Virus record (IMG/VR): IMGVR_UViG_3300028558_000791
Coordinates: 62,001-126,000 of that record
Length of the DNA: 64,000 nt
Reading direction: 5' to 3' (one strand)
Position numbers and translations under genes: made by a program. Positions 16 to 63,688 of this stretch are shown here, in pieces (within the stretch, counting starts at the first letter, position 1; the number at the start of each line of letters is the position of its first letter). The notes beneath the pieces were generated by a model that was not told the DNA's origin, did not search any database, and saw nothing but the letters and a program-made list of their open reading frames with translations.

Positions 16-222
16 ATGCATCCTGAGATTAGGAAATTCTGGGAAGATGCTGGCCATGTTGTACATGGCCCTTCCATTATAGATACATATGAGATATACA
101 TTGGTCCTGGTCCAGCTAGACTAATTGAAACAATTGCTCACGGCAACAAGTACCGATTTAATAAACAATGGTATTCGGAAGAGGAAGCGCTAAGGATTAT
201 CAAGCTAAAAGCTTTTCTTTAA
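16..222 (+). CDS. Hypothetical protein with C-terminal LKAFL motif
   Basis: 68-aa ORF ending EEEALRIIKLKAFL. Confidence 0.7.
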   Translation: MHPEIRKFWEDAGHVVHGPSIIDTYEIYIGPGPARLIETIAHGNKYRFNKQWYSEEEALRIIKLKAFL

Positions 223-228
223 CCTATC

Positions 229-241
229 AATAGGTGGATAT
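229..241 (+). promoter_or_regulatory. Candidate phage promoter, AATA-N6-YAT class (first of about 11 copies)
   Basis: AATAggtggaTAT lies just upstream of tRNA-Cys; the same spacing recurs upstream of other tRNA clusters and genes. Confidence 0.45.
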
Positions 242-259
242 ATAAGATACGCTATTTAA

Positions 260-335
260 GTCGTCGTACCCAAATGGTTAAGGGACGGAGCTGCAACCTC
301 CGTATGTGTCCGTTCGAATCGGACCGACGACTCCA
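260..335 (+). tRNA. tRNA-Cys(GCA)
   Basis: Acceptor GTCGTCG/CGACGAC, loop CT-GCA-AC, TTCGAAT T-loop, U73, encoded CCA. Confidence 0.95.
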
Positions 336-344
336 TACCACTAA

Positions 345-434
345 GGAGATTTGCGTGAGTGGTTGAAACGGTCACCCTGGAAAGGTGAAGGGGTCGCAAG
401 GCTCCCATGGGTTCGAATCCCATAGTCTCCTCCA
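345..434 (+). tRNA. tRNA-Ser(GGA), U73 discriminator
   Basis: Cloverleaf with long variable arm, loop CT-GGA-AA, ends TCTCC-T-CCA. Confidence 0.93.
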
Positions 435-440
435 AAACAA

Positions 441-638
441 ATGTGCTATCTATGTTTACAAGACAATCCATTTAATATCCAGGATTTATCTAAAGAAAAG
501 ATAGATATTAAGAGGAATAGAGCTAAGTTAGTTAAAGAGCTATTAGAGTTTTATTATAAAGAAGTTGTTTGTGATGATGGTAAGTTGGAGATAATAAAAC
601 TAAAAGAAGAGCAGTATAAATTATCCCGAGAGATGTAA
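441..638 (+). CDS. Hypothetical protein
   Basis: 65-aa ORF exactly filling the gap between two tRNAs. Confidence 0.5.
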   Translation: MCYLCLQDNPFNIQDLSKEKIDIKRNRAKLVKELLEFYYKEVVCDDGKLEIIKLKEEQYKLSREM

Positions 639-643
639 TATAT

Positions 644-733
644 GGAAACTTGGCCGAGTGGTTTAAGGCGCTAGTCTTGAAAACTAGAGATCTCGAAAGG
701 GGTCCGGGGGTTCGAATCCCTCAGTTTCCGCCA
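644..733 (+). tRNA. tRNA-Ser(TGA)
   Basis: Cloverleaf, long variable arm, loop CT-TGA-AA, G73-CCA. Confidence 0.95.
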
Positions 734-755
734 GATTCATTATTGAAAGATTAGA

Positions 756-1676
756 ATGAATAAGATTGCAACATTAGTAGGATGTGCCATTGGAGATGCT
801 CTTGGCAATCCATTTGAGATGTGGAGTGTCCATGAGCCCAAGCTTAAAGAGTGGGATGGTCAGTTCAAAGCTGGCGGTACTTTCTGGGTAGGAGAGGCCG
901 GACAATATACCGATGATACCCTAATGAGCCTTGCTTTGTCATATTCTTTGCTTGAGAAGAGCGGATTCGATCAAGAGCACGTAGGTCTTCAGTACTTGGC
1001 TTGGATGGAGTCTGGTAACACTCGCGGTATTGGCGGGACTACTCACAGAGCTTTGACACGAATGAAGAACGGAGCATCCGCTCTTGAGAGTGGTGTTACC
1101 CATAACGATGGCAAGCCTGCCTCTGGTAATGGAACTGCTATGAGAGCCACACCAATTGGCCTCTGGTACCGTAAAGATATCGGCAAGTTGATTGAGGTTG
1201 CAATGGCGGACGCATCCATCACTCATAATTCATTTGAACCCAAGATGGGTTCTGTGGCGGTTGCACTAGGTACTGCATTGATTGCTAATGGTGCAACTGA
1301 CATGATTGAGGTCTTAGAAGAGGTAGCTGAGGTAATCTCTGAATCTATTGTCAAAGAGAAGTTAGTATTGGCCTTAACCCATCTAAAACTGGGTACCGAA
1401 CATTTTGAGGCCCTTGCGCAGATCGGCGTCAATGGCTATGTTCCAGAGACGGTTGGCGCGGCATTCTATTGTTTAGGGGCCAACGCAAACTATAGAGATA
1501 CTGTAGTGTTAGCTGTCAAGGCTGGCGGAGATACTGATACCACTGCGGCGATTGCTGGTGGCATGGCTGGTACTTTATACGGACTTGATGGTATTCCATT
1601 AGAATATAAGGATAAAGTAGAGAATTTCGAGTTATTGCAATCATTGACTGATGAACTTGTCAATAATGAGATATAA
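756..1676 (+). CDS. ADP-ribosylglycohydrolase (ARH3/DraG family), copy 1
   Basis: GCAIGDALG, YTDDT, GNGTAMR, GGDTDTTAAIAGGMAG metal-binding motifs. Confidence 0.92.
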   Translation: MNKIATLVGCAIGDALGNPFEMWSVHEPKLKEWDGQFKAGGTFWVGEAGQYTDDTLMSLALSYSLLEKSGFDQEHVGLQYLAWMESGNTRGIGGTTHRALTRMKNGASALESGVTHNDGKPASGNGTAMRATPIGLWYRKDIGKLIEVAMADASITHNSFEPKMGSVAVALGTALIANGATDMIEVLEEVAEVISESIVKEKLVLALTHLKLGTEHFEALAQIGVNGYVPETVGAAFYCLGANANYRDTVVLAVKAGGDTDTTAAIAGGMAGTLYGLDGIPLEYKDKVENFELLQSLTDELVNNEI

Positions 1677-1691
1677 TAGTTAGCATAACAC

Positions 1692-3806: not shown

Positions 3807-4223
3807 ATGGACAACACGTTAGATAAAGAAGAGAACGCGAAGAACATTTATGTTATCCGACATAAGCTAGGTAATCTCAGACCATGTCTTGGTCGTGGTG
3901 ATCGTTGGGAATACAAAGTAGGTAACTTCAATGTCGTCATGTTTGCATATGACATTGGTGATGTCCCGCCCCAAACAGATTCCATTCTTCGTTTTGAAAA
4001 AGTTGACGTAATTCTGAATGAATTTACTAAAGATGGAACAGCATCCAGCGTCTCTCTAAGGGACGACCCGCGCCTCAAAAACTACGAACCCATTCGATAT
4101 AATGTAATTGAATCTCCGGGTGGTAGAATCAACTTAAGTAATGGAGATGGGATGCCCATCCTTCATGTGTGTGAGCTTATTCGTTATCTTCATCGCCTAT
4201 CTAATCTAACAGCATTCATGTAA
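3807..4223 (+). CDS. Hypothetical protein with C-terminal NLTAFM motif
   Basis: 138-aa ORF ending LHRLSNLTAFM. Confidence 0.75.
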   Translation: MDNTLDKEENAKNIYVIRHKLGNLRPCLGRGDRWEYKVGNFNVVMFAYDIGDVPPQTDSILRFEKVDVILNEFTKDGTASSVSLRDDPRLKNYEPIRYNVIESPGGRINLSNGDGMPILHVCELIRYLHRLSNLTAFM

Positions 4224-5376: not shown

Positions 5377-7470
5377 ATGAAGCACGTTAGCATTGATAGA
5401 TATCGCAACATCGGGATTATGGCTCACATTGACGCGGGCAAAACCACTGTAAGCGAACGCATCTTGTTCTATGCCGGTCTCATCCATACAATGGGTGAAG
5501 TACACGATGGTGACACTGTTATGGATGATGATCCGCGTGAGAAGACTCGCGGCATCACTATCAACTCAGCCGCTACCACTTTGTACTGGAAAGGTTCGGA
5601 TAACTCCCAGCCCGACCATCGCATCAACTTAATTGACACTCCAGGTCACATTGACTTCACTGTCGAAGTGGAAAGGTCTCTCCGTGTTCTTGACGGCGCT
5701 GTCTGTGTATTAGACGGCTCCCAAGGCGTTGAGCCTCAGACTGAACAGGTATGGCGTCAAGCTGACCGCTACAACGTAGCTCGTATCTGTTTTGTCAACA
5801 AGATGGATAAGACTGGCGCTAACTTCAATATGTCCGTTGATTCTCTTCGTGAGAAGCTAGGAGTCAAGGTCGTTCCTATTCAACTCCCTTATGGAGAAGA
5901 GGAACAGTTCCATGGCATCATTGACCTTATCAACATGAGAGTCGTTAGGTTTGATGAATCTACCAAGGGTAAGTCATTTTCATTCATGACTATGGACTAC
6001 CTTCCCGATAGCTTGATGAGCCACGTTCATCGAGCCAGGGAGCGTATGCTTGAAGCCCTAGCTGATGTCAGCGACTCCATCATGGAGAAATTCTTAGACG
6101 GCAGACTCAATGATATCTCTATTGAAGAGATTCATGCGGCTCTCCGTAAAGGAACTATCTCTCGCACTCTCTTCCCAGTTCTTTGCGGCTCTGCCCTAAA
6201 GAACAAGGGAGTACAGATGCTCCTTGATGCGGTCTTGGCCTATCTACCATCTCCAGTTGACTTGCCTCCTGTGTCTGGAATCAATCCAGATAACAAAGAG
6301 CAAGTTACTCGTCGCTTGGTAGATGAGGAACCATTGTCTGCTTTGGCATTCAAAATCATTAGCGAAGACACTGGCAACCTAACCTTTATTCGAGTTTACT
6401 CGGGTGTCCTACGTTCTGGCTCTTATGTGTATAACATAAGTCGCGGACAGAAGGAACGCGTCTCCCGTCTTGTACTTATGCACGCAAGTGATAGGCAGAA
6501 GATTGAAGAGGCAAGGGCGGGTGACATTGTTGCCGCTATTGGCTTGAAGACTACATATACTGGTGACACGCTGTGTGATGAGAAGTCTCCTATCATCTTA
6601 GAGAAGATGGACTTCCCTGATCCAGTAGTCGAGCTTTCTATTGAGCCGAAGACCTCGGCTGACTATGATAAGCTAGCTGTTGCTTTACAGAAGATGTTGC
6701 TTGAAGACCCAAGCCTCAAGGCTTATACTGACCCAGATACCTCTCAGACTATTCTGAAGGGTATGGGTGAGCTTCACCTTGAGATTGTAGTTGATAAGCT
6801 TCGTACTGACCGTGGAGTTGGTGTAACGACTGGACAACCTCGTGTTTCCTATCGTGAGACCATTACCAAGGAAGGTCATGCGGACTATAAACACAAAGCC
6901 CAGAATGGTGGCAAAGGTGTCTATGGTCATGCTGTCATCAAGGTAAAGCCAGGTGCTAGAGGCTCAGGCTTCGTCTTCCATGACGAAGTAGTAGGCGGCA
7001 GAATCCCAAGAGAGTTTATTCCATCTGTGGAGAAAGGCATCAAGAATGCCCTTCAAAACGGAATCTACTCTGGCAATCCAACGGTTGACATCGAGGTTAC
7101 CCTCATAGATGGTAGCACTCATGCAGTCGATGGTTGCGCCTTTGGATTCGAACTAGCTGGTTCAAAAGCTATCCAAGAAGCTGTCAATGCTGCGGGTCCA
7201 ACTGTGTTGGAGCCAATCATGGCAGTGGAAGTGGTAGCGCCTGAGGAGTATATGGGTGATGTTATTGGTGTCTTGTCTGCCCGTGCAGGCCAGATTACTA
7301 ATACATTGAGTCGTGGTAATGCTAGAGTCGTACAGGCTAACGTGCCATTGAGAAGCCTTTTCGGGATCACTACTGACCTCCGAGGAAGGACTCAAGGTCG
7401 TGCTGTACCTAGTATGGTCTTCTCTCATTACGATACTTGTTCCTTGAAACCATCGGAGCTTGATAAGTGA
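5377..7470 (+). CDS. fusA: Elongation factor G
   Basis: AHIDAGKTT, RGITI, DTPGHIDF, NKMD, GSAL, MGELHLEI, YRETI, LEPIMAVEV; five-domain length (697 aa). Confidence 0.97.
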   Translation: MKHVSIDRYRNIGIMAHIDAGKTTVSERILFYAGLIHTMGEVHDGDTVMDDDPREKTRGITINSAATTLYWKGSDNSQPDHRINLIDTPGHIDFTVEVERSLRVLDGAVCVLDGSQGVEPQTEQVWRQADRYNVARICFVNKMDKTGANFNMSVDSLREKLGVKVVPIQLPYGEEEQFHGIIDLINMRVVRFDESTKGKSFSFMTMDYLPDSLMSHVHRARERMLEALADVSDSIMEKFLDGRLNDISIEEIHAALRKGTISRTLFPVLCGSALKNKGVQMLLDAVLAYLPSPVDLPPVSGINPDNKEQVTRRLVDEEPLSALAFKIISEDTGNLTFIRVYSGVLRSGSYVYNISRGQKERVSRLVLMHASDRQKIEEARAGDIVAAIGLKTTYTGDTLCDEKSPIILEKMDFPDPVVELSIEPKTSADYDKLAVALQKMLLEDPSLKAYTDPDTSQTILKGMGELHLEIVVDKLRTDRGVGVTTGQPRVSYRETITKEGHADYKHKAQNGGKGVYGHAVIKVKPGARGSGFVFHDEVVGGRIPREFIPSVEKGIKNALQNGIYSGNPTVDIEVTLIDGSTHAVDGCAFGFELAGSKAIQEAVNAAGPTVLEPIMAVEVVAPEEYMGDVIGVLSARAGQITNTLSRGNARVVQANVPLRSLFGITTDLRGRTQGRAVPSMVFSHYDTCSLKPSELDK

Positions 7471-7700
7471 GTGAGGAGAAGGAACTGAAGGGGAAATTCG
7501 TCAAAGTTGCTAAGGCCGATGGGTCTCAGGACTTTGACGAATCCTTTTGGGAAATATGGGACGGCGACTATTTACTATTCAAAAAGTCTGTCAAAGAACT
7601 TTGTAATGAGATTCGTTGGCTAGATTATGAAATGATTTTCTGTCCGGAGTTTGGTAAGTTGCTTTTGAAAAGAGCAAAGAAGTTGAAAGCGTTCTGGTAA
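7467..7700 (+). CDS. Hypothetical protein with C-terminal LKAFW motif
   Basis: GTG start overlapping the fusA stop; ends KRAKKLKAFW. Confidence 0.7.
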   Translation: MSEEKELKGKFVKVAKADGSQDFDESFWEIWDGDYLLFKKSVKELCNEIRWLDYEMIFCPEFGKLLLKRAKKLKAFW

Positions 7701-10854: not shown

Positions 10855-10930
10855 CGTGGTGTAGCAAATCGGCATATGCGACTGTTTCATACGCAGTATT
10901 AAGTGGGTTCGACTCCCACCTCCACGACCA
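10855..10930 (+). tRNA. tRNA-CAT (elongator Met or Ile2)
   Basis: Loop TT-CAT-AC, T-arm GTGGG-TTCGACT-CCCAC, A73-CCA; one acceptor-stem mismatch. Confidence 0.85.
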
Positions 10931-10932
10931 AA

Positions 10933-11328
10933 TCAATTCGTAGCAATTCCCGAACCTGGATCTCTACCAGTGAATGATAAGGTGGTTGTTCCTTGTGGAA
11001 CCTGAGGGAAGCTACTGATATGTTTCTCAAGATACTTCTTAATTTGTGCTGGTAACTTAGCGTAATTACCTGCAAATTGTGGAGGTTCAACTGATGGTGC
11101 TGACACGTCAACGTTCAAACCACCCAAGGTAGCCTCAGTAATGGTGACGTTGATATTTAAGTCAGCCTGATCTTTCTTGAGTTGAGATGGAAAATTCATG
11201 ATTCCATTAGCGCTGCTCTCGCCATAGCTGGCGGCATTCTGAATGATTTCTTGAAGATTCTGCGATTGAGCATACTTATTTTGAAATTTGTTTGCTAGTT
11301 TTAGAAGTAGGGCCTGAGACTTTTTCAT
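10933..11328 (-). CDS. Hypothetical protein, possibly virion-associated
   Basis: 131-aa reverse-strand ORF beginning MKKSQALLLKLANKFQNKYAQ. Confidence 0.75.
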   Translation of the reverse strand: MKKSQALLLKLANKFQNKYAQSQNLQEIIQNAASYGESSANGIMNFPSQLKKDQADLNINVTITEATLGGLNVDVSAPSVEPPQFAGNYAKLPAQIKKYLEKHISSFPQVPQGTTTLSFTGRDPGSGIATN

Positions 11329-11369
11329 ACAAGATATATGGCTTTAGTGGTATATAAGATACCGAAAAT

Positions 11370-11444
11370 GGTCGATTAACTCAGCGGTAGAGTGATGCCC
11401 TTACAAGGCGTAAGTCGGGGGTTCGAATCCCTCATCGACTACCA
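11370..11444 (+). tRNA. tRNA-Val(TAC), copy 1
   Basis: Cloverleaf, loop CT-TAC-AA, A73-CCA. Confidence 0.95.
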
Positions 11445-11517
11445 GATATGCGGGTTTTACCAAGGGCATAGCGTCCCGAGGCATCTCTTGGAAGGTGACT
11501 TAGTGTATTCCAAACAT

Positions 11518-11592
11518 TGGAGATTAGCTCAATGGTAGAGCGTCGGTTTTACACTCCGAAGACTTAGGGTTCGATCCCCTTATCTCCAACCA
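11518..11592 (+). tRNA. tRNA-Val(TAC), copy 2
   Basis: Acceptor TGGAGAT/ATCTCCA, loop TT-TAC-AC, U31-U39 mismatch, CCA. Confidence 0.88.
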
Positions 11593-11660
11593 TGTGTCCC
11601 TAACATATAGGGGATGACACCTATCACAGTGGTGTGGAATGCTGGGGAGTACAGCACCAT

Positions 11661-11734
11661 GGGCGGTTAACTCAATGGTAGAGTGCTAGCATGACTCGCT
11701 AGCTACAGGGGTTCGATTCCCTTACCGCCTACCA
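11661..11734 (+). tRNA. tRNA-Val(GAC), atypical anticodon loop
   Basis: Stem CTAGC/GCTAG, loop AT-GAC-TC (A32, U37), A73-CCA. Confidence 0.85.
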
Positions 11735-14079: not shown

Positions 14080-14154
14080 GCGAATGTAACTCAATGGTAG
14101 AGTCTCTGCCTTCCAAGCAGATGGTTGAGGGTTCGAGCCCCTTCGTTCGCTCCA
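14080..14154 (+). tRNA. tRNA-Gly(TCC), copy 1
   Basis: Cloverleaf, loop CT-TCC-AA, U73-CCA. Confidence 0.95.
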
Positions 14155-14160
14155 AGCTCT

Positions 14161-14267
14161 GGTGCCTATAGAAACCTATTCGCCCCTAATTCGAGTCCAA
14201 AGGGCTGTGACATGGCCAGCCACGAATTAGGATAAGCAGTAAAGTCAATCTGTAGGAAATAAACACC
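14161..14267 (+). ncRNA. Candidate structured ncRNA A (long irregular hairpin with central bubble)
   Basis: Nested helices GGTG/CACC, CCTATAG/CTGTAGG, CCTAATTCG/CGAATTAGG, GGCTG/CAGCC; lies between two tRNAs with no ORF. Confidence 0.5.
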
Positions 14268-14276
14268 ACGCTATAA

Positions 14277-14351
14277 GCAGACTTAATTCAGTGGTAGAAT
14301 GATTCGTTGCCAACGAATATGTCACGGGTTCGAGCCCCGTAGTCTGCTCCA
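14277..14351 (+). tRNA. tRNA-Gly(GCC), copy 1
   Basis: Cloverleaf, loop TT-GCC-AA, U73-CCA. Confidence 0.95.
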
Positions 14352-14473
14352 AGACGAATGCCAGGTAGGATTACATGGATAAAGCGTCAGGAGTAATCCT
14401 GATTCGAGATGGTTCAAACCCATCAAACTTTCCCGTAAGGGATCGTAAAAAATCTTTCCAAATTTAGTCGTCT
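14352..14473 (+). ncRNA. Candidate structured ncRNA B (multi-branch, with T-arm mimic)
   Basis: AGACGA/TCGTCT closing stem, AGGATTAC/GTAATCCT, GATGG-TTCAAAC-CCATC, TCCC-GTAA-GGGA. Confidence 0.5.
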
Positions 14474-14477
14474 ATTT

Positions 14478-14551
14478 GCGGTTATCTTCTAATGGTAAGA
14501 ATACTGGTCGCCATCCAGAGAACGCCGGTTCGATTCCGGCTAACCGCTCCA
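14478..14551 (+). tRNA. tRNA-Gly(GCC), copy 2, C33
   Basis: Acceptor GCGGTTA/TAACCGC, loop TC-GCC-AT, U73-CCA. Confidence 0.82.
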
Positions 14552-14587
14552 CGATTCCCAATCTTTCATTTGAAAGCGTGACTTTAT

Positions 14588-14740
14588 ATGCGTTCACATC
14601 ATTATCTCTTTCTCTTTCTTCTCGTGGTAGTTGTAGGCTTCCTAACTCTTAGAGGATGTGTTCACTGTACCGGCAGAGTTCTCTCTGGCCCAACTCCTAC
14701 AAATACTATCTATGTTGTTCCAGGAGGACCAGCTAGGTAA
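14588..14740 (+). CDS. Small membrane protein (50 aa, not in the ORF track)
   Basis: MRSHHYLFLFLLVVVVGFLTLRGCVHC...; fills the gap between tRNAs. Confidence 0.45.
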   Translation: MRSHHYLFLFLLVVVVGFLTLRGCVHCTGRVLSGPTPTNTIYVVPGGPAR

Positions 14741-14760
14741 GTACAAAGCAGTTAAAATTA

Positions 14761-14844
14761 GCGGGCATCGCATAGCGGCGATTGCACTTGCCTTCCAAGC
14801 AAGACTCTGAAACAACGTGGGTTCGAGTCCCACTGCCCGCTCCA
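14761..14844 (+). tRNA. tRNA-Gly(TCC), copy 2, 13-nt variable region
   Basis: GCGGGCA/TGCCCGC, loop CT-TCC-AA, insert ACTCTGAAACAAC before the T-arm. Confidence 0.88.
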
Positions 14845-14848
14845 GATT

Positions 14849-15151
14849 ATGATTGACGCATGTAAGTTCTGCGAGCATAAGATTCCTGTACCTGACCTTG
14901 GTGATGACTGGTGGTGTCCCAAGTGCCAGAAGTATTCTGTTGTCTGTATGGATAACAGTATTGTGGAGTCAGAGACATTGCGCTCTGGTAATTTCTATAT
15001 TATATTCTTTCCAGCTTATAAGACTGCCAGCATTGCTTCCACCAAAGAGGCAGAGAAACAAATTCTAAAGTCTTTTGAAATGGATGAGTTTACCCACGAG
15101 CAAGCACTCTATTGGGCGAACAAACTAAAAACATACGTACTGTTTCAGTGA
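14849..15151 (+). CDS. Hypothetical Zn-ribbon protein with C-terminal KLKTYVLFQ
   Basis: CKFC...CPKC; helical tail. Confidence 0.7.
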   Translation: MIDACKFCEHKIPVPDLGDDWWCPKCQKYSVVCMDNSIVESETLRSGNFYIIFFPAYKTASIASTKEAEKQILKSFEMDEFTHEQALYWANKLKTYVLFQ

Positions 15152-47074: not shown

Positions 47075-47267
47075 AGGCGATTGTGACTGTAATATGCCAG
47101 ATTGCTTAGTATGTTTCTTGCGATATGTAAAAGATGTCGAAGATGCAGGTTATGCGGACAAAGAATTGTATTGGGAAGGAATTGAATTAGAATCTCGATT
47201 GGCTGTAGAGGAGCATGCAGAGAAAAACATTCCTGATGAAATCTATAACTTGAAAGATTCTTGGTAA
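47037..47267 (+). CDS. Hypothetical protein (start uncertain)
   Basis: CDCNMPDCLVC; ends IYNLKDSW. Confidence 0.5.
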   Translation: MENSETKSTSLSEGDCDCNMPDCLVCFLRYVKDVEDAGYADKELYWEGIELESRLAVEEHAEKNIPDEIYNLKDSW

Positions 47268-48950: not shown

Positions 48951-50447
48951 ATGAGTCTGCCTGTCATTAAGGACCAGTCCGTCATTGATAACATCAAAGT
49001 TGTGGAATCCGTCAAGCGATGGACACTTAACTTTACCGACATTGTCAATAACAACAATAAGTTTTACAACCTGGAAGTTGTTAAGTCATCTGACGACAAA
49101 TTCTATCTGTACACCGTTTACGGTCGAGTTGGTGCCGGTGGCGCCAAAGAGTACAGGTCAGCATCTTCTCTCAACGAAGCAGAGAAGGAAGCCGAAGGCA
49201 TCATCAAGTCCAAGAACAAGAAGGGCTATGTTGAAGTCAAGCTTGCTAAAGCTGACATCGGTTCCGAGCTTGGTAAGGCCAAGGTCGATACCTCTGTGAC
49301 CCTTGAGTCTTTGAAGAAGGCTGGCGTGAAGGTTACAGAAGAGCCTCAAGCTGCCAGCAAACTGCATGTTGAAGTGCAAGACCTTGTTCGCACTTGGTTC
49401 GGCGTTACTCAAGAGTTCCTTGAGTTGAACCTTGACACCAAGAAGTGCCCACTCGGCCAGTTGTCTCTCGATCAAATCGACAAGGCCAAGCAGATTCTTG
49501 AAGAGGCTCGTAATATCGTTCATGCTAAGAAGCCTGACAAGGATGAGTTGAACAAGTTGACGAGTTCCTATTACTCCAACATTCCTCACGTTCTTGGTTC
49601 TCGAATCAATGCGGATTTGCTTCGTTTTGATGATGACCCCAAGATTGACAAAGCGTTTGATATTCTTGACGTCTTTGCTGACGCCAAGAACGTTCAGGCC
49701 GTTATTTCCAAGAAGAGCGCGGTTGATTCGCAATATGCGACTCTGAATGCTGGTTTGGAATACGTTGATCCAAAGGATCCGACCTTCAAGTGGCTTGAGG
49801 CAATGGTTCTTGAAACCCGCGCCAGCAACCACACCGGCTTGGGCAAGCTGAAGATTCATAAGGTCTTCAAGCTGGCTCGTAACAATGAAGACAAATACTT
49901 CATGGAGACAGCCGAAAAGATTGCTAAGGAATGCGGTAAGTTTGTTCCTTCTCCGGTCTATTCTAATTTGGTCAAGAGGCGCCCTGATCTCTCCAAGGAG
50001 ATGCAGGAGCTTTACCAGAGGGCTAACATTCTCCCTGGTTGGCACGGTACTCGCCGTGCAAACATGATTGGTATCACTACCAAGGGACTTTTGATTCGTC
50101 CTTCTGGAGTTATCCATGCGGGTTCTATGTATGGTGACGGTATTTACTGGGCCGTTCATAGTACTAAGTCCATCAATTACTGTGACGTCCGTGGTTCTCA
50201 CTGGGCTCAGGGTAATAACAAGACCGCGTATCTCTTCTTAGGAGACGTGGCTTTTGGTAACCAGGAGATGGCTGGTGGTTCTCGTATGTATACCAAGAAG
50301 AACATCGCGCCTAACCATTCTGTGTGGGCAAAGTCCGGTGGTAACTCTGGATTGTACAATGACGAACTGATTACCTACACCGCTTCTGGTGCGGGTCAGC
50401 AGCACGCCCTTCGCTACATTATCGAATTTGAGACGCAAGCCAAATGA
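48951..50447 (+). CDS. PARP-family ADP-ribosyltransferase (WGR + helical regulatory + catalytic domains)
   Basis: NKFYNLEV...YGRVG; PLGQLSLDQI...YYSNIPH; WHGTRRAN...GSMYGDGIYWA...KSINYC...YNDELITY (H-Y-E). Confidence 0.93.
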   Translation: MSLPVIKDQSVIDNIKVVESVKRWTLNFTDIVNNNNKFYNLEVVKSSDDKFYLYTVYGRVGAGGAKEYRSASSLNEAEKEAEGIIKSKNKKGYVEVKLAKADIGSELGKAKVDTSVTLESLKKAGVKVTEEPQAASKLHVEVQDLVRTWFGVTQEFLELNLDTKKCPLGQLSLDQIDKAKQILEEARNIVHAKKPDKDELNKLTSSYYSNIPHVLGSRINADLLRFDDDPKIDKAFDILDVFADAKNVQAVISKKSAVDSQYATLNAGLEYVDPKDPTFKWLEAMVLETRASNHTGLGKLKIHKVFKLARNNEDKYFMETAEKIAKECGKFVPSPVYSNLVKRRPDLSKEMQELYQRANILPGWHGTRRANMIGITTKGLLIRPSGVIHAGSMYGDGIYWAVHSTKSINYCDVRGSHWAQGNNKTAYLFLGDVAFGNQEMAGGSRMYTKKNIAPNHSVWAKSGGNSGLYNDELITYTASGAGQQHALRYIIEFETQAK

Positions 50448-55178: not shown

Positions 55179-55979
55179 ATGCAACGAAACATAATTCTGT
55201 ATCGCGGTTCGGATTTTGAAAAAGAGGAATTAGATTCAGCGCTTCAAGTATTTGAATGCACTGATCGAAGGCCGGAAATCCAAGCTGGCGATCTTGTTAT
55301 CGGAAGATATTCACTTTGGCCGTTCTATGTGGATCAAGCTAAAGACATTGAGTATGTTGGCGCCAAGCTGATTAACAATTATCAGCAGTACCGTTACATT
55401 GCCGATTTGCAGAATTATGTAATGGACCTTCGAGAACTGACTCCTCGGACCTGGAGAGACATCACGGATCTGCCAGATAAGGGTCAGTTCATCTTGAAGG
55501 GTGAGACTAACTCTCGTAAATCCAATTGGAAACGAGATATGTTCGCACCCGACAAGAAGACAGCAATTGAGATTTATGCTCGCCTGATGGATGATAGTCT
55601 AATCGGGCAGCAAAACATTTATATTCGCCGGTACGAACCAATGGTTACGTACATGGAAGGTATCAATGGAATTCCAATTACTAAAGAGTTTAGATTCTTT
55701 GTCGCCTATGGACAGATTCTAAGTGGAGGTTATTACTGGCAAAACTATGTAGATGAGTTGCCAGAAGTCCCCAACCCAGATGAAGTTCCTCGTGAATTCT
55801 TGAATGAAGTTATTGTGCGAGTGGGCAATCAATCCAATTTCTATACCATTGACGTGGGACAATCCATCTCTGGCAAATGGTTTGTAGTTGAACTGAATGA
55901 AGGACAGCAATCAGGGTTATCCTGTAACGATCCTTTTACTATGTACAAAAATCTAGACAAGGCCATTAGAAGCCAATGA
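55179..55979 (+). CDS. ATP-grasp protein (R2K/DUF4343-like), copy 2
   Basis: FILKGETNSRK, EFRFFV, TIDVG...WFVVELNEGQQSGL. Confidence 0.75.
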   Translation: MQRNIILYRGSDFEKEELDSALQVFECTDRRPEIQAGDLVIGRYSLWPFYVDQAKDIEYVGAKLINNYQQYRYIADLQNYVMDLRELTPRTWRDITDLPDKGQFILKGETNSRKSNWKRDMFAPDKKTAIEIYARLMDDSLIGQQNIYIRRYEPMVTYMEGINGIPITKEFRFFVAYGQILSGGYYWQNYVDELPEVPNPDEVPREFLNEVIVRVGNQSNFYTIDVGQSISGKWFVVELNEGQQSGLSCNDPFTMYKNLDKAIRSQ

Positions 55980-56602
55980 AAGAGTTCAACTCTATTCAAG
56001 AGCTGTGGGATTACTGCGCGTACTGTCCCATTTGTACACGGAATTGTCGAGAGGTAATTGTCTCAGTAGGGCCAGATAAAGTTTTTATTCTAGTGTCCTC
56101 TGAAAAGAAAGACAACAATCTATTTATGCAATGTACCTACAAGAATAAGCGCTCTATCTATACGGTTGAATATAATCTCAACTGTACTGATAATACATTT
56201 CGTGTAGAAGTACCTAACGTAGTAGAATTGCCGCTTGGTGAAACTGCCAAGCCCGAAAAGATTAAAGAAGCCTATTTCTTCTTCTTTGTTGAAGGTATGT
56301 GTAATCAGTGCAATTGCGCTACAGCACATAGTTTAGACTTGGAGCTAGATATAGTGGATAGACGGATTTCTAACATCGGACTAGAGCGTGAGAGTTTTTA
56401 TCTTTTTGAAGGTAAAGACAAATTTCACGTGACTCCCATTCATGACCGAAACGTCATGTTGGTGAGCCGCTGCTATGTCGACGATGAGCAACTTGGCTTC
56501 TCCGAAAGTGATAAAACAATCGAGTTGCCTTTAGTAAAACTTGATCTTTCTGATCAGGAAAAAGTCACTAATAAAATTAAGACTCTAATTCTATTTAGTT
56601 GA
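55976..56602 (+). CDS. Hypothetical protein with C-terminal KIKTLILFS
   Basis: CPIC...CNQC; helical tail. Confidence 0.75.
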   Translation: MKEFNSIQELWDYCAYCPICTRNCREVIVSVGPDKVFILVSSEKKDNNLFMQCTYKNKRSIYTVEYNLNCTDNTFRVEVPNVVELPLGETAKPEKIKEAYFFFFVEGMCNQCNCATAHSLDLELDIVDRRISNIGLERESFYLFEGKDKFHVTPIHDRNVMLVSRCYVDDEQLGFSESDKTIELPLVKLDLSDQEKVTNKIKTLILFS

Positions 56603-59135: not shown

Positions 59136-59221
59136 GCCGATGTGGCGGAATGGCAGACGCGGAAGTTTCAAAAACTTCTGTCCGCAAGGACGTGTGGGTT
59201 CGAGTCCCTCCTTCGGCACCA
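59136..59221 (+). tRNA. tRNA-Leu(CAA)
   Basis: Long variable arm, loop TT-CAA-AA, A73-CCA. Confidence 0.95.
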
Positions 59222-59251
59222 GCATTTTCAATTCAACCTTTCAAGTAAGTC

Positions 59252-59713
59252 ATGAATATTAAGAATCTGTTGACCTTAACGGTTCGTACTGTAGACTTTA
59301 ACTTAGTTGCTAAGCAACCAGAACTTCTGGTTCAGCTAAGAAAATTGACGCTCTCTCCATATTCCGGCTTGAACTATGAACTCAATCGGATGCTGGAAGA
59401 TGTAAAGACACGAGAAGTCAGATGTCAAGTGCTTTTGGCCTATCGTTTTCGTAAACTAGTAGGCTGGGCCATCTTATCGAAAGAAACTACCCAATACAAT
59501 TTTTCTCGGTCTTTTGATGGTTTCAAGGCTGAGAATGGTATGATGTTTCAAGTTTTCGTGGATCCGACTTATCGAAGGCAAGGAATTGCTTCTGAAATAT
59601 ATAAGAAGGCTCAACATCTGGCAAATAATGAACTTCTTCATGTTTGTCCATGGGATGAAAGAAGTACAAATTTCTACGCCCGACATACGACAACAGCTAC
59701 TAAATGGCTGTGA
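59252..59713 (+). CDS. GNAT acetyltransferase
   Basis: VFVDPTYRRQGIASEIY acetyl-CoA loop; STNFY. Confidence 0.8.
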   Translation: MNIKNLLTLTVRTVDFNLVAKQPELLVQLRKLTLSPYSGLNYELNRMLEDVKTREVRCQVLLAYRFRKLVGWAILSKETTQYNFSRSFDGFKAENGMMFQVFVDPTYRRQGIASEIYKKAQHLANNELLHVCPWDERSTNFYARHTTTATKWL

Positions 59714-59746
59714 AATCTAGCAATAAGGCGATATATAAAACACAAC

Positions 59747-59830
59747 GCTACCATGGTGGAATGGCAGACACAGCAGTCTTAGAAGCTGCCGCCGCAAGGC
59801 GTGGGGGTTCGAGTCCCTCTGGTAGCACCA
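59747..59830 (+). tRNA. tRNA-Leu(TAG)
   Basis: Long variable arm, loop CT-TAG-AA, A73-CCA. Confidence 0.95.
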
Positions 59831-59831
59831 A

Positions 59832-60047
59832 ATGGAACATGATTGGCAAGTTGAACTAGTTGAATACTATGATATGGATTCAGACTGGGTATGTCAAAAA
59901 TGTCAAGTTAGAATGCACAGAGAGTTTCCTCGTAAAGAGGGTGGCGGTTACAGAGACACCAGAGAAACTTTAACTGAATTCAAAATTAGACTTGAATCTC
60001 CATGGGAAGCTTGGAGAAAGATTCCTAAAGAATGTTCCAGTAAGTAA
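59832..60047 (+). CDS. Hypothetical protein
   Basis: 71-aa ORF between tRNAs, CQKC. Confidence 0.55.
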   Translation: MEHDWQVELVEYYDMDSDWVCQKCQVRMHREFPRKEGGGYRDTRETLTEFKIRLESPWEAWRKIPKECSSK

Positions 60048-60049
60048 AT

Positions 60050-60126
60050 GCTCAGGTGACGGAATTGGCATACGTACGAGTCTCAGAAACTCGGTTTTGA
60101 GGGTTCGACCCCCTTCTTGAGCACCA
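60050..60126 (+). tRNA. tRNA-Leu(CAG) lacking the long variable arm
   Basis: Leu-type D-loop, loop CT-CAG-AA, 5-nt variable loop GTTTT, A73-CCA. Confidence 0.88.
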
Positions 60127-60130
60127 AATT

Positions 60131-60217
60131 GTCATCGTGGTGGAATGGTATACACACTAGTCTGAGAAGCTAGGGCTCGTAAGGGCCGTGAGGGTTCGAG
60201 TCCCTCCGATGACACCA
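60131..60217 (+). tRNA. tRNA-Leu(GAG)
   Basis: Long variable arm, loop CT-GAG-AA, A73-CCA. Confidence 0.95.
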
Positions 60218-60229
60218 ATTGAGAGGGAA

Positions 60230-61006
60230 TCAACCACCCCAAGTTTTTGGAGCTTCATAAGGGTTAGGTGGCAACTGCTCTGATTCTTTTTCTCTTGTTA
60301 CTTGATAAACGTTAGCATTATCATCATAAGGAATGGCTTGTTTGGCTTTGTATTGAGGTTCTCTTTTGAGATTTTCAAAAGCAAGTTCATTGCTAACGCC
60401 AGGCTGCCTAATACTTTTCTTGTAAATGTCAAGCGCCGCTTGAGTTTGTCTTCCTAACTTACCATCAGGGTTTACTCCGAGCATAGTCTGGAAGACAGGA
60501 TCAATTTTAGGACCAGTCCAACCCTGTGGTTTGGCGGGAGTCTTTGGAGAGACCATTGTTTGAGTTGGAAGATTAATGACATTTGATTGAGGCTGGGAGT
60601 TCCAGTTAATAGGAACTGGGCCCTGTCGATTATCTGTTCCAAACATCTTTTGTTGGCCAGCTTGAACAATTTCAGAATACTGCTCTTGAGAAATCTGGTT
60701 TCCCATATAATCAGTGTGAGCTTGCTGCAAATAACCGCCAACATACTCTTTGACTTTGTCAGGAGTTAGGGTGGCAGTATTGACAGCATTAATGCTTTGA
60801 ATACGACTCTGTGTTGATACCTTAGAGCTTTCAATATCTTCTGGTCTGACTTGTCCGACAGCAAATTTGTTTAATAAAGCATCATAATACTTGGAGCCCA
60901 GCTTTTTCTTTTCTTTTTTAGCGGTCTTGACGGCCAAAGCCCTGGTGGCTAAATTCTCGTAATCAGCGGCCATCTTCATCAATTCTTTTAGGGAGTAGGA
61001 CATCAA
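60230..61006 (-). CDS. Hypothetical protein with a peptidoglycan-binding-like segment
   Basis: FQTMLGVNPDGKLGRQTQAAL resembles PG_binding_1; N-terminal LMKMAADYENLA helix. Confidence 0.75.
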   Translation of the reverse strand: MMSYSLKELMKMAADYENLATRALAVKTAKKEKKKLGSKYYDALLNKFAVGQVRPEDIESSKVSTQSRIQSINAVNTATLTPDKVKEYVGGYLQQAHTDYMGNQISQEQYSEIVQAGQQKMFGTDNRQGPVPINWNSQPQSNVINLPTQTMVSPKTPAKPQGWTGPKIDPVFQTMLGVNPDGKLGRQTQAALDIYKKSIRQPGVSNELAFENLKREPQYKAKQAIPYDDNANVYQVTREKESEQLPPNPYEAPKTWGG

Positions 61007-61069
61007 AACCTCTTTTGCGTACGATATATAAGAGTATACTAATAATTAGGCAAGATTATTACCACATAT

Positions 61070-61145
61070 GGTTTGCGTTGTCATTTGGCAATGATAGGTG
61101 TCTGTGAAACATCAAAAGCGGGTTCGATTCCCGTCGCTCACCCCA
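61070..61145 (+). tRNA. tRNA-His(GTG), copy 1 (divergent)
   Basis: Encoded G-1:C73, loop CT-GTG-AA, two acceptor-stem mismatches. Confidence 0.75.
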
Positions 61146-61157
61146 TACCATTTTTAT

Positions 61158-61232
61158 GGTGACTGTAGTTCAATGGTAGAACGCTAGCTTGTGGCGCTAG
61201 CTACGCGGGTTCGATTCCCGTCAGTCACCCCA
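61158..61232 (+). tRNA. tRNA-His(GTG), copy 2
   Basis: Encoded G-1:C73, loop TT-GTG-GC, CCA. Confidence 0.93.
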
Positions 61233-61236
61233 AAAT

Positions 61237-61311
61237 GGGCCGTTCGTCTACTGGCTAGGACACTTGGCTTTCACCCAGGAAAAACGGGATCGATACCCGT
61301 ACGGCTCACCA
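61237..61311 (+). tRNA. tRNA-Glu(TTC)
   Basis: Loop CT-TTC-AC, T-loop ATCGATA, CCA. Confidence 0.9.
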
Positions 61312-61488
61312 ATGAAAAAGATAGTTAGTTTAGCGTTTCTTTTTTTAATTGCAGCATCTTGCAATCCTAATCCTGCGAATTATCATGTACCGCAGGGCTA
61401 TCAGACCTGCCGAACAATTGCGGACTGTCCTCGTGGCACCTACTGTGGTTTTGTAGAAATTGATAGTTATGCTGTTTGCCGCAGATGA
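61312..61488 (+). CDS. Small Cys-rich lipoprotein
   Basis: Lipobox IAASC; CRTIADCPRGTYC...C module. Confidence 0.6.
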   Translation: MKKIVSLAFLFLIAASCNPNPANYHVPQGYQTCRTIADCPRGTYCGFVEIDSYAVCRR

Positions 61489-61521
61489 ATCTGGCAATAA
61501 GCTGATATAATAGATACGACT

Positions 61522-61597
61522 GGCCCATTCGTCTAATGGTTTAGGACGGCAGCCTCTCACGTTGCTAATACGGGTTCGAATCCCGTATGGGTCACCA
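61522..61597 (+). tRNA. tRNA-Glu(CTC)
   Basis: Loop CT-CTC-AC, CCA. Confidence 0.93.
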
Positions 61598-61610
61598 AGT
61601 AAGTATTCAT

Positions 61611-61687
61611 GTCTCTGTAACTCAACTGGATAGAGTGGCAGTCTTCTAAACTGCAAGTTGGGGGTTCGAGTCCCTCCAGAGATGCCA
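61611..61687 (+). tRNA. tRNA-Arg(TCT)
   Basis: Loop CT-TCT-AA, G73-CCA. Confidence 0.95.
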
Positions 61688-61700
61688 AGTAAGATAACAT

Positions 61701-61777
61701 GTGCCTGTAGCTCAGTTGGATAGAGCGTCGGTCTACGAAACCGAAGGTCGAAGGTTCGAATCCCTCCAGGCATGCCA
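61701..61777 (+). tRNA. tRNA-Arg(ACG)
   Basis: Loop CT-ACG-AA, G73-CCA. Confidence 0.95.
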
Positions 61778-61782
61778 AGTAC

Positions 61783-61857
61783 GTCTCCATAGTGAAACGG
61801 ATATCACGATTGTCTTCGAAACAATCAGTACAGGTTCGATTCCTGTTGGAGATGCCA
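61783..61857 (+). tRNA. tRNA-Arg(TCG)
   Basis: Loop CT-TCG-AA, G73-CCA. Confidence 0.93.
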
Positions 61858-61858
61858 A

Positions 61859-61880
61859 AGCGCCGAAAGGCGCTATTTTT
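61859..61880 (+). terminator. Intrinsic terminator after the Arg tRNA cluster
   Basis: AGCGCC-GAAA-GGCGCT-ATTTTT. Confidence 0.8.
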
Positions 61881-61899
61881 GTTTCTGGAATATAATAAA

Positions 61900-62304
61900 A
61901 TGGAACTTCATGATATTTGCGATGGCTGTAGTAGACATCCCGCCGTTTGCATATGCAGTGTGTCCGTTGGACCAGATGGCGTATCGGCATCTCGACCTCA
62001 GCCTGCTGCAATGGCTGATAAGCTCAGAATCATTGCTAGTGATGCTCGTATTAAAGAACACCAAACAATGTCTCAAAGCTTAACTGAACAAGTTAGATTC
62101 AAGGCTTTTGCAGCCGCTAAACAAGGAAAAGTATCTCTTCATATCTGGTGTGGCAGCCAAAACATCTCAAAAGAAGCTGCCGAGATGGTCGCTCGTGAAT
62201 TGGAACGAGACGGTTTCAAATGTACCATCAGCCATGAAATTACAGCCCATTATTCAAATACGGACTGTGATTCTGAAGACCTTTTATTTGTTAGTTGGGA
62301 ATGA
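61900..62304 (+). CDS. Hypothetical protein
   Basis: ORF from ATG 61900, N-terminal CDGC...CICS. Confidence 0.65.
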   Translation: MELHDICDGCSRHPAVCICSVSVGPDGVSASRPQPAAMADKLRIIASDARIKEHQTMSQSLTEQVRFKAFAAAKQGKVSLHIWCGSQNISKEAAEMVARELERDGFKCTISHEITAHYSNTDCDSEDLLFVSWE

Positions 62305-62307
62305 ATC

Positions 62308-63270
62308 ATGAAAATCCTGTCAGGCATACAGCCGTCAGGAACAATTCACATCGGAAACTATTTTGGAATGATCAAGCCACTGCTTGGTTTCCAAGACAAG
62401 GGAGAAGTGTTTTGTTTCTTGGCGGATTACCATTCAATGACCTCATTGTTTGATGCAAAAGAACGTAAAGCAAATTCTATCGAAGCGGCCACTACTCTTT
62501 TAGCTTGTGGTCTAGACCCCCTGAAGACAACCTTCTTCAAACAGTCAGACGTACCACAAGTAACTGAACTGGCCTGGATGCTGTCCACCGTAACTCCTAT
62601 GGGATTACTAGAACGCTGTCATAGCTACAAAGATAAGACATCCAAAGGTATCTCGGCTAATCATGGGCTATTTGCTTATCCCGTATTGATGGCAGCAGAT
62701 ATTCTCATCTACCAATCTAATCTTGTACCAGTTGGTAAAGATCAGATGCAGCACCTAGAAGTTGCCCGCGACATTGCTGTCAAGTTCAATACTGCTTATG
62801 GAGATGTATTTACCCTGCCAGAACCATTCATTCAACAGCAAGTTGCTATTGTTCCGGGAACTGATGGCGGTAAGATGTCCAAAAGCCACGGCAATACACT
62901 TGAAGTGTTTGGAGATGAGAAGCTTCTCAAAAAGAAGATAATGTCCATCACAATGGATAGTAGGTCTCCAACTGAGCCTAAACCTGACGCTAGCCAGAAT
63001 ACAGCTATTCAGTTGCTGAAATTGGTAGCTCCCGAAGATATTGCTTCTGATACAGAGACAAAGCTTAGGGAAGGTCAGCTTGGCTATGGTACGCTCAAGG
63101 GAATCCTGTTTGAGCATTGTACTAACTACTTTGCCAAACCACGTGAGTTGTACAACGATTTGAAGAATAACCAAGACTATGTTGAGGCTATTCTCGAAGA
63201 TGGGGCTGCTCGTGCAGCTTGTACAGCTCAATATACGATGAAGAACGTAAGGAAGGCTGTTGGTCTATGA
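62308..63270 (+). CDS. trpS: Tryptophanyl-tRNA synthetase
   Basis: SGIQPSG.IHIGNY (HIGH), YPVLMAADIL, PVGKDQMQHLE, KMSKS. Confidence 0.96.
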   Translation: MKILSGIQPSGTIHIGNYFGMIKPLLGFQDKGEVFCFLADYHSMTSLFDAKERKANSIEAATTLLACGLDPLKTTFFKQSDVPQVTELAWMLSTVTPMGLLERCHSYKDKTSKGISANHGLFAYPVLMAADILIYQSNLVPVGKDQMQHLEVARDIAVKFNTAYGDVFTLPEPFIQQQVAIVPGTDGGKMSKSHGNTLEVFGDEKLLKKKIMSITMDSRSPTEPKPDASQNTAIQLLKLVAPEDIASDTETKLREGQLGYGTLKGILFEHCTNYFAKPRELYNDLKNNQDYVEAILEDGAARAACTAQYTMKNVRKAVGL

Positions 63271-63461
63271 AGACTAAAGAATGGCTTCTAAATCGTAAAA
63301 GAGATTTGGAAGAAGAGCTTGAGGGTTACGACGAGCTAATAGAAGAGCTGAAAGAAGTTGAAAAAGCTCTTGCTGCTTTGGAACCCAAAAAGAAAAAGAC
63401 CGAGTGTAATGGATGCGCAAGTGGTTGTGATATCTGTCGCACTGGCCCTTACTACCGATGA
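63267..63461 (+). CDS. Hypothetical protein (coiled coil plus CxxC..CxxC)
   Basis: Coupled ORF. Confidence 0.6.
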   Translation: MKTKEWLLNRKRDLEEELEGYDELIEELKEVEKALAALEPKKKKTECNGCASGCDICRTGPYYR

Positions 63462-63688
63462 AGGATATCATGTCAGATCAGGACGATGAAGATTTGAGGT
63501 TGCGTGATAAACTGGCAGCGGCTGCCCTTCCAGCTCTCATTCAGAGGTATAACGATAAAGTTGATAGTAAATGGATTGTAGATGGTGAGGTAACAGAACG
63601 ATTTGGTTATGATGCAGATCAGATAGCTATCTTGGCGTATAAGATAGCTGATGCGATGCGTAAAGCTAGATTACAAGCTTTTACTTGA
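63458..63688 (+). CDS. Hypothetical protein with C-terminal RLQAFT
   Basis: LRDKLAAAALPAL...IAILAYKIADAM. Confidence 0.7.
   Translation: MKDIMSDQDDEDLRLRDKLAAAALPALIQRYNDKVDSKWIVDGEVTERFGYDADQIAILAYKIADAMRKARLQAFT

Follow-up and report, generated by a model that had tools for sequence, protein, structure and literature searches.

Unrelated small proteins of a huge-phage clade share a C-terminal tail that looks like an undescribed address tag

Introduction

The function of hundreds of huge-phage genes is unknown, and so, almost entirely, is the organization of the phage proteins in the cell or the virion. We analyzed a stretch of 64,000 nucleotides, hereafter the window, that is 100% identical to positions 62,001–126,000 of the rhizosphere-metagenome contig IMGVR_UViG_3300028558_000791, a huge-phage sequence of 480,838 bp; the window covers about 13% of the phage genome. 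Several small open reading frames (ORFs) of the window end in nearly the same residues, and the locus thereby raises the question of why small proteins that otherwise differ should share a C-terminal tail. An initial annotation quoted ten such C-termini, all of which are present exactly as written and where they were placed, and proposed that diverse proteins are recruited to one hub through a free C-terminus.

The tail looks like an undescribed address tag on otherwise unrelated small proteins. The helix is portable and stands in exact register to the terminal carboxylate, its conserved residues share one side, and its carriers are unrelated, soluble and restricted to one clade. Together these features point to a docking or sorting tag, and we put at slightly better than even the chance that this portable module, anchored at the C-terminus, serves docking or sorting to one common, clade-specific receptor.

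Results

Seven ORFs of the window end in the same tail

ORFs were called longest first, with a minimum of 45 aa in the window and 55 aa in the final sets of related loci, and these gene sets are our own calls rather than a curated annotation. The window set comprises 100 ORFs and 19,412 residues. Residues are numbered back from the last one (−1), φ denotes a hydrophobic residue, and the broad motif is defined as R/K(−9), φ(−8), φ(−5) and F(−2), anchored to the protein end. Seven carriers, approximately 7% of about 100 ORFs, were found; each is given with the position of its tail, taken as the last 12 codons.

16–222, + strand: 68-aa tail ORF; tail at 184–219, ...LRIIKLKAFL
3807–4223, + strand: 138-aa tail ORF; tail at 4185–4220, ...HRLSNLTAFM (Thr at −4)
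7467–7700, + strand: 77-aa tail ORF overlapping the EF-G stop codon; tail at 7662–7697, ...KRAKKLKAFW
14849–15151, + strand: 100-aa Cys-rich ORF with a variant tail; tail at 15113–15148, ...NKLKTYVLFQ
47261–47674, + strand: 137-aa tail ORF; tail at 47636–47671, ...QRYLNLKAFL
47671–48075, + strand: 134-aa tail ORF, tandem neighbor of 47261–47674; tail at 48037–48072, ...NRYWNLKAFL
55976–56602, + strand: 208-aa Cys-rich ORF with a variant tail; tail at 56564–56599, ...NKIKTLILFS

Five of the six LKAF-type ORFs of the initial annotation are thus retained. The ends of 14849–15151 and 55976–56602, which it had set apart as a second variant, are real but do not form a separate class, as both fit the same broad motif, the former with K(−9), L(−8), Y(−5) and F(−2). 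Three other ORFs that it had listed were treated differently:

63458–63688, + strand: doubtful and not counted as a member; it ends ...RKARLQAFT, with Lys, not a hydrophobic residue, at −8
20704–21378, + strand: rejected; it ends ...ILKPFL, lacks R/K(−9), and has prolines at −3 and −8 that are incompatible with a helix
31674–32240, + strand: rejected; it ends ...ILEGFL, and the ortholog in the related locus L009 ends ...MLEGII, so that the Phe is not conserved

The C-terminal region of 63458–63688 matches phrog_2201 (E=7e-8). The second ORF, first noted as 20725–21378, can start at 20704, and 31674–32240 has a weak, sub-threshold match to DUF6939 (Pfam PF22075, E=5.5e-5; the score of 23.3 bits falls below the cut-off, 27).

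Relatives, which are contigs of 250–450 kb, were sampled through loci around the ligase, EF-G and HslV-like genes and through two codon-restricted DNA pattern scans of 2.9 million viral contigs. Loss of the tail from orthologs would have spoken against the proposed code; instead, orthologs at only 22–30% identity keep it. In the 47261–47674 family, a nine-member alignment spanning 16–76% identity has L(−5) and F(−2) as its only invariant columns, and an ortholog at 22% identity keeps RYLNLRVFI. The neighboring 47671–48075 keeps its tail in nine metagenomic orthologs (63–91% identity), and an ortholog at 30% identity retains RYLNLKAFI. The orthologs of 55976–56602 (28–84% identity) all end NK[IL]KT[LM][IL]LFS, three orthologs of 3807–4223 (L049–L051) keep RLS[NG]LTAFM, and the tail of 14849–15151 is kept in L049 and L050. 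Directly after EF-G, the same three relatives (L049–L051) encode a 75-aa ortholog of 7467–7700 ending KKL[KR][HY]MKAFW; the kept position, together with the start inside the EF-G stop codon, suggests that this ORF is translationally coupled with EF-G.

For 16–222, two tandem homologs in L031 (38% identity) keep ...LRMIKLKAFL, which argues that the + strand ORF is the real gene. At L048 4387–4725 (− strand), where more upstream sequence is present, a longer antisense ORF of 112 aa overlaps the equivalent of 16–222, and longest-first calling selects that antisense frame. The Atlas model of 16–222 has a predicted local distance difference test score (pLDDT) of 0.77, and a lead to T4 DUF5495 (Atlas score 0.79) was discarded as within noise.

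The tail is defined by its peptide sequence and its distance from the carboxylate

The full consensus of the tail is [RK](−9) φ(−8) x [KN](−6) [LM](−5) [KR](−4) A(−3) F(−2) φ(−1)-COOH. When the tails of 17 BLAST-distinct clusters were aligned at their ends, R/K(−9) was present in 100% and φ(−8) in 93%, although neither had been used for selection; F(−2) is at 100% by selection, and A(−3) ranges from ~72 to 91% across clusters. The remaining positions are hydrophobic at −11, K/N/H/Q at −6, L/M/I at −5, K/R at −4, mostly Ala at −3, and L/I/W/M at −1. Where the strict motif decays, as in L003 (...RYKNLLAFT) and L015 (...RLESLLVFS), the four core positions remain.

The shared ending noted at the outset is real, and the case for it proved stronger than first put. 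In the window set, L[KT]AF[LMW] occurs five times, all five at the exact C-terminus, where a random-position null gave at most two C-terminal occurrences in 20,000 draws. Of 15 occurrences of the broad motif among the window proteins, seven are C-terminal versus 0.043 expected (P=4e-14), and in the first 53 loci plus the window 26 of 30 occurrences of [LIM][KR]AF. are C-terminal. Among the DNA-pattern matches listed, R/K(−9) was found in 28/35 long ORFs versus 7/36 chance short frames. In a separate count, the triad RK(−9)/φ(−8)/φ(−5) was present in 26/64 further penultimate-Phe ORFs versus 3/626 non-Phe ORFs.

Every codon of the motif varies synonymously across 39 tails: Leu(−5) is written CTG, TTG, CTA, TTA or CTT, Ala as GCG, GCA, GCT or GCC, and Arg(−9) with all six codons. 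Selection therefore acts on the peptide, as had been argued from fewer tails, and, as the synonymous sites are not conserved, the codons rule out a repeat or a regulatory element at the level of DNA or RNA.

The tail starts acidic, usually with [ST]-x-[EQ]-[EQ], and ends basic and hydrophobic. Positions −17 and −16 are rich in Glu/Asp and preceded by Ser/Thr, while acidic residues are absent from the last nine positions, which is the signature of an N-capped helix. From this pattern, and from models of two carriers that place a helix there, the tail is predicted to be a helix of about 17–19 residues, usually N-capped.

The fixed spacing from the stop codon, and hence from the peptidyl-transferase center, is also what a nascent-chain signal would have, in which the last ~10–17 residues act in the ribosome exit tunnel and influence either termination or the coupling with the gene that follows. 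Translation genes are plentiful in the window, and TGA stops are somewhat more common in tail ORFs (40/79 versus 231/657). The base at +4, the share of overlapping starts and the use of TAG, however, do not clearly differ, the median gap to the next gene being 10 versus 26 nt; the next feature after some tail ORFs is a tRNA gene or a spacer, and the N-cap and acidic-to-basic gradient are features of a helix in the mature protein. We give the nascent-chain explanation only a very slim chance.

No profile in Pfam or PHROGs matches the core carriers, the tail profile finds nothing in the PDB better than E=0.3, and the profiles of two carrier families have no meaningful match there. The tail module is too short for a database-wide hidden Markov model census; searched against 1.84 billion representatives, its profile returned only two proteins at E≤0.001, both MORN-variant and both tail-ended. 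The open-access literature held nothing relevant on the motif strings or on shared terminal motifs in huge or jumbo phages. The C-terminal RLY motif of the bS21 proteins of huge phages (PMC7550191) is a different thing from the tail.

The carriers are soluble proteins of different architectures

Within the window, the only similarity that BLASTP revealed between carriers lies in the last ~19 residues of the 47261/47671 pair. When 39 ORFs were clustered without their tails, 17 clusters resulted, for which hhalign probabilities did not exceed 5%, and the tail-less parts of 82 unique tail ORFs, after four jackhmmer rounds, gave 39 clusters without detectable similarity outside the tail. Among their architectures are repeats of the MORN-variant "HREDGPA" type, Cys-rich proteins resembling zinc ribbons, an all-beta protein (47671–48075) and a P-loop kinase; another carrier, judged by eye from its sequence, looks mostly helical. 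Over all carriers, Pfam and PHROGs gave only the kinase and a weak DUF6745 match.

These data bear on whether the carriers are one hyper-divergent paralog superfamily in which the tail is a slowly evolving structural helix with no shared partner. Tandem arrays are common, the 47261/47671 pair shares acidic N-termini, and iterative search merges clusters, for example the 47261 family with ORFs of L009 and L011. Part of the diversity is accordingly duplication and divergence rather than repeated capture of the tag. A metagenomic MORN-variant protein of 162 aa, P0248, belongs here as well: it has a complete tail internally (…KSQEEFERWMKLKAFF, followed by more sequence) and another at its end (…NSQEEFEKFLKLKAFW), and from its sequence it looks like two tandem carrier genes fused through loss of a stop codon. 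The architectures are nevertheless plainly different, a structural helix need not keep K-A-F and its distance to the carboxylate across folds, and the kinase described below, most homologs of which lack the extension, contradicts a purely structural helix. We regard a single superfamily as distinctly improbable. The outcome that had been named as damaging, namely that the ORFs are full-length paralogs of one family, does not hold overall, given the 39 clusters and the gain in the kinase, yet some of the carriers do reflect old paralogy.

Transmembrane-like segments were found in none of 39 carriers versus 59 of 430 controls, and neither the net charge nor the Cys content of the carrier domains differs from controls. 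The tail helix itself is basic and moderately amphipathic (median hydrophobic moment, µH, 0.35–0.40; net charge +2; Heliquest-type D ~1.0 versus 0.28–0.37 in control C-termini). A peripheral membrane anchor, by which such a helix would park soluble proteins on the inner host membrane or on a phage-made lipid structure, fits these properties, the lack of acidic residues from the last nine positions with Lys/Arg beside hydrophobics, the frequent terminal Trp, and the addition of the module to a soluble enzyme. Membrane-targeting helices, however, are conserved in physical character and not in sequence. The near-invariance of A(−3), F(−2) and R/K(−9) and the exact register to the carboxylate favor a protein receptor instead, the N-terminal half of the helix is acidic, and the hydrophobic moment is only moderate. 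A membrane anchor therefore seems unlikely to us.

A nucleotide kinase has gained the tail in one lineage

The only carrier with a known activity is a T4-gp1-like deoxynucleoside monophosphate (dNMP) kinase from a related locus:

L081:2002–2643: P0010, T4-gp1-like dNMP kinase of 213 aa (Pfam DNMK PF21448, E=6e-15)

The top fold match of its AF2 model (pLDDT 89.8) is the T4 gp1 dNMP kinase, PDB 1DEK. In a collection of 5.8 billion proteins, only the six closest of 118 kinase homologs (71–100% identity) have the tail, and one of these six, P0015, is an N-terminally truncated fragment. The six share an extra ...FDSADEFRRILKLKSFL, end ...[FY]xx[AT][DE]EFR[RK]xxKLKSF[LI], and all fit the broad motif. 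The other 112 homologs, many from other huge contigs, stop ~19 residues earlier, after the last kinase helix. In the AF2 model of P0010, that helix spans residues 178–194 and is followed by a loop and the tail helix at 200–212. An extension of ~19 aa after a finished enzyme, present in one lineage only, identifies the tail as a portable module and not as part of the fold.

The tail is abundant in one clade of huge phages

The relatives sampled encode at least 82 distinct tail-bearing ORFs of 62–223 aa; the codon-restricted DNA patterns detect only a fraction of tails, and carrier totals are thus lower bounds. Among the matches listed, true ORF-end matches came mostly from contigs of the clade, including ones of 447, 433, 359, 349, 252 and 179 kb. 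Loci fetched through the tail itself give a biased carrier frequency of 8%; the unbiased values are 7/100 ORFs in the window and 22/505 ORFs with the broad motif in clade loci around the HslV-like gene.

Carriers are scattered along the clade genomes, often in tandem arrays: four each in L031, L118 and L153, and in L180 one array of four to five plus another of four; L180 has ten tails among 30 ORFs. In the L180 array at 137–2464, two neighbors have near-miss tails, ...NKLKTIVVF, with Phe last, and ...MSKLQGLL, which may represent decay or an alternative version of the tag. The carrier content between the metallophosphatase gene and the ortholog of 48305 varies among relatives. A search for related loci with a six-tail alignment retrieved only the window's own phage and one relative.

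No ORF of 1,626 ended in [LMI][KR][AV]F. in 123 other loci, mostly from unrelated viral contigs (1.19 Mb). Within the loci sampled, the tail is confined to the clade, where it is abundant. Its absence from unrelated phages makes it more likely that the partner is phage-encoded or specific to the host of the clade. One phage-encoded candidate, suggested by the initial annotation, is a peptidase of the window:

43036–43629, + strand: HslV-like N-terminal-Thr peptidase; top Atlas match 0.98, to HslV/proteasome clusters

The peptidase is real. Its family has 5,420 members, several of which the JGI names HslVU peptidase subunit, with invariant M1-T2, K34 and Gly-rich motifs, and the gene belongs to the highly conserved core of the clade. 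The Lys-rich C-terminal extension of 43036–43629 (PKPKRKVKRATK) is of variable length across the family, and no HslU-like ATPase was seen in the window. In 61 loci of phages with a 49–59% identical HslV-like gene, however, none of 1,618 ORFs had the broad motif. The absence of tails around these more distant genes indicates that the tail tracks the clade and not the peptidase.

The same counts weigh on the idea that the tail is a degron or a protease-adaptor tag, which would mark its carriers for timed destruction or tether them to the HslV-like peptidase or to a host AAA+ protease. Non-polar C-termini act as bacterial degrons. The presence of the peptidase among the core genes would suit such a role, as would the L-x-x-F-φ that the tail shares, near the free C-terminus, with the EDLSRFIL end of HslU (PMC4106860). 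The Phe of HslU, however, lies at −3 and on an AAA+ hexamer, whereas no tail carrier is an ATPase; the 61 loci with the peptidase have no tails; it is not obvious why a dNMP kinase should carry a degron; and a helix of at least 12 residues with an invariant R/K(−9) exceeds known degron needs. For these reasons, we hold a degron or adaptor role to be quite unlikely, and the peptidase as tail partner is possible, without positive support.

Other genes of the window

The window has densely packed genes, almost all on the + strand, and a GC content of ~43–44%. Megablast of 20 kb of the window found no match among GenBank phages, and tblastn with the HslV-like protein against deposited phage genomes gave nothing above 60% identity; the deposited phage genomes hold no close relative of this phage. 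The following features surround the carriers.

260–1883, 10855–11734, 14080–14844, 18236–18309 and 59136–61857: 25 tRNA genes, in blocks by amino acid
5377–7470: EF-G
37590–38111: peptidyl-tRNA hydrolase PTH2
39701–40594: tRNA-His guanylyltransferase Thg1
40789–41937: single-chain PheRS
756–1676, 27353–28390, 28438–29841, 32731–33723 and 48951–50447: the five ORFs of an NAD/ADP-ribose module
36306–37553: Kelch beta-propeller protein of 415 aa; best Pfam match to the KLHDC2/KLHL20/DRC7 model
23210–23467/23477–23764: tandem paralog pair (41% identity), unrelated to the tail carriers
53435–53770/53767–54096: tandem paralog pair (36% identity), unrelated to the tail carriers

The tRNA blocks comprise Ser (four genes), Val (three), Gly (four), Leu (four), His (two), Glu (two) and Arg (four), with Cys and Met also present, and small ORFs, tail carriers among them, are interspersed among the tRNA genes. 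EF-G, PTH2, Thg1 and PheRS make up a translation toolkit. The PheRS joins a class II core and an FDX-ACB domain in a single chain, an architecture that we take to be of the mitochondrial monomeric type. The NAD/ADP-ribose module consists of NAMPT, an NMNAT-like/Nudix fusion, a PARP with WGR and regulatory domains in a eukaryote-like architecture, and two ADP-ribosylglycohydrolase paralogs (37% identity). Along with the Kelch protein, the window also encodes an NAD ligase, a UvrD-like helicase and a radical SAM protein. The C-termini of the 23210–23467/23477–23764 pair are ...KVSY and ...VVFY.

Within 20 nt of 82 + strand starts, on the upstream side, there is an excess of G at −11 to −7, and a Shine-Dalgarno-like 4-mer precedes 38% of the + strand starts of the window versus 15% of random positions. 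Shine-Dalgarno initiation is probably used in the host, at least in part.

Discussion

The reading we favor, by a little more than an even chance as said above, is a docking or sorting module. A clade of huge phages of roughly 250–480 kb has attached the tail to dozens of unrelated soluble, mostly small accessory proteins. R/K(−9), φ(−8), φ(−5), F(−2) and φ(−1) would lie on one side of the helix, and this face, together with the free carboxylate that always stands exactly one residue past the Phe, would insert into the groove of a common receptor. Many different proteins would thereby be brought to one place or machine.

The data show the anatomy of the tail, its anchoring at the protein end, its portability, its restriction to the clade and the selection on its peptide. 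We infer such a receptor, and any identity for it, from the tail and its carriers, and several observations weigh against the proposal. No receptor for the tail was found, so that of the initial idea of docking through a free C-terminus the end register, the unrelated carriers and the portability stand, but not the hub. The basic and moderately amphipathic character of the helix would equally suit a membrane, and the many tandem arrays, with some clusters merging on iterative search, account for a share of the carriers by descent. The two AF2 results are not decisive. In P0010, the tail helix (pLDDT ~90) may pack on its own domain rather than stand free. In 47671–48075, a C-terminal helix is predicted at low confidence (residues 117–133, pLDDT 32–47, after a beta core at 60–82), and a fold search with this low-confidence model returned nothing below E=0.2. 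Finally, the dNMP kinase, as the sole carrier with a known activity, indicates no particular destination.

A more specific proposal, possible but appreciably less probable than docking as such, is that the tail is a true sorting signal, analogous at the C-terminus to the T4 capsid targeting sequence (CTS) or to the peroxisomal targeting signal PTS1, that would load dozens of rapidly evolving accessory proteins and at least one enzyme of nucleotide metabolism into one phage-built structure. The interior of the capsid, from which the proteins would be co-injected with the DNA, or a replication compartment inside the cell might be that structure. If this is true, the tagged proteins could be recognized directly in genome sequence, and foreign proteins could be loaded by means of a transplanted tail, as they have been with the T4 CTS. 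A tag that is readable in the sequence of roughly 4–7% of sampled ORFs would define a functional class that takes in at least 39 families of unknown function, and the tail peptide would be usable as bait for the receptor. The tail is also a rare clear phage case of a short terminal motif spreading over unrelated proteins, with the dNMP kinase as a datable gain of the motif.

Among known systems, the clamp-binding tails (bacterial QL[SD]LF, the PIP box Qxx[LIM]xx[FY][FY] and those of the T4/RB69 clamp partners) often sit at the extreme C-terminus of diverse partners. The tail resembles them in that location and in its φ-x-x-aromatic-φ spacing (L-K-A-F-L). It differs in lacking the Gln, −8 being hydrophobic and −6 mostly K/N/H, and the DNA enzymes of the window, the NAD ligase at 43755–45629 (...DFLDLVK) and the UvrD-like helicase at 34765–36288 (...KKHLKQ), have no tail. 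The only enzyme found among the carriers is the dNMP kinase, and most are of unknown function. A sliding clamp, one of the hubs initially suggested, is accordingly disfavored.

In E. coli, HslU activates HslV through the C-terminal octapeptide EDLSRFIL, which has a strictly conserved Phe (PMC4106860). The likeness to HslU and to the HbYX tails, to which attention had also been drawn, lies in an aromatic residue near a free C-terminus that docks between Ntn-hydrolase subunits, in a phage that encodes an HslV-like peptidase. As to register, the Phe of HslU is at −3 and that of the tail at −2, and HbYX has its aromatic at the matching position −2 but as Tyr, not Phe. HslU and HbYX ends are carried by AAA+ hexamers, whereas the tail carriers are small and have no ATPase domain, and the AAA protein of the window (21989–23176) ends in an acidic tail. 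Tail and peptidase, both present within the clade, did not co-occur in the 61 loci of other phages with an HslV-like gene.

KLHDC2-type propellers read C-terminal degrons, and the Kelch protein at 36306–37553 is only a lead as a receptor for the tail.

The membrane helices of MinD and FtsA are, like the tail, C-terminal, basic, amphipathic and transplantable onto soluble proteins. Their sequences are loosely conserved, whereas the tail has near-invariant residues at −9, −3 and −2 and a fixed end register.

PTS1 ("SKL-COOH") and the cargo-loading peptides of encapsulins are short, extreme C-terminal tags on unrelated soluble proteins that serve one receptor or shell, and they share with the tail the exact register to the free carboxylate. 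Their consensus sequences are different, and PTS1 comprises three residues in an extended conformation. Encapsulin cargo genes adjoin the shell gene, whereas the tail carriers are scattered over the genome and no shell is known.

A parallel from phage biology is the CTS of the T4 internal proteins, a terminal peptide that is likewise the sole conserved part of diverse small phage proteins, that can be transplanted to foreign proteins, and whose carriers lie, as the tail carriers do, in variable regions of the genome (PMC3012670). The CTS differs in being N-terminal, whereas the tail is C-terminal in all 82 carriers, is helical and has another sequence, and one of its carriers is a nucleotide kinase. 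The CTS is removed by the prohead protease. By analogy with T4, loading into the capsid would be an attractive fate for tail carriers, which are small, diverse and encoded in variable regions.

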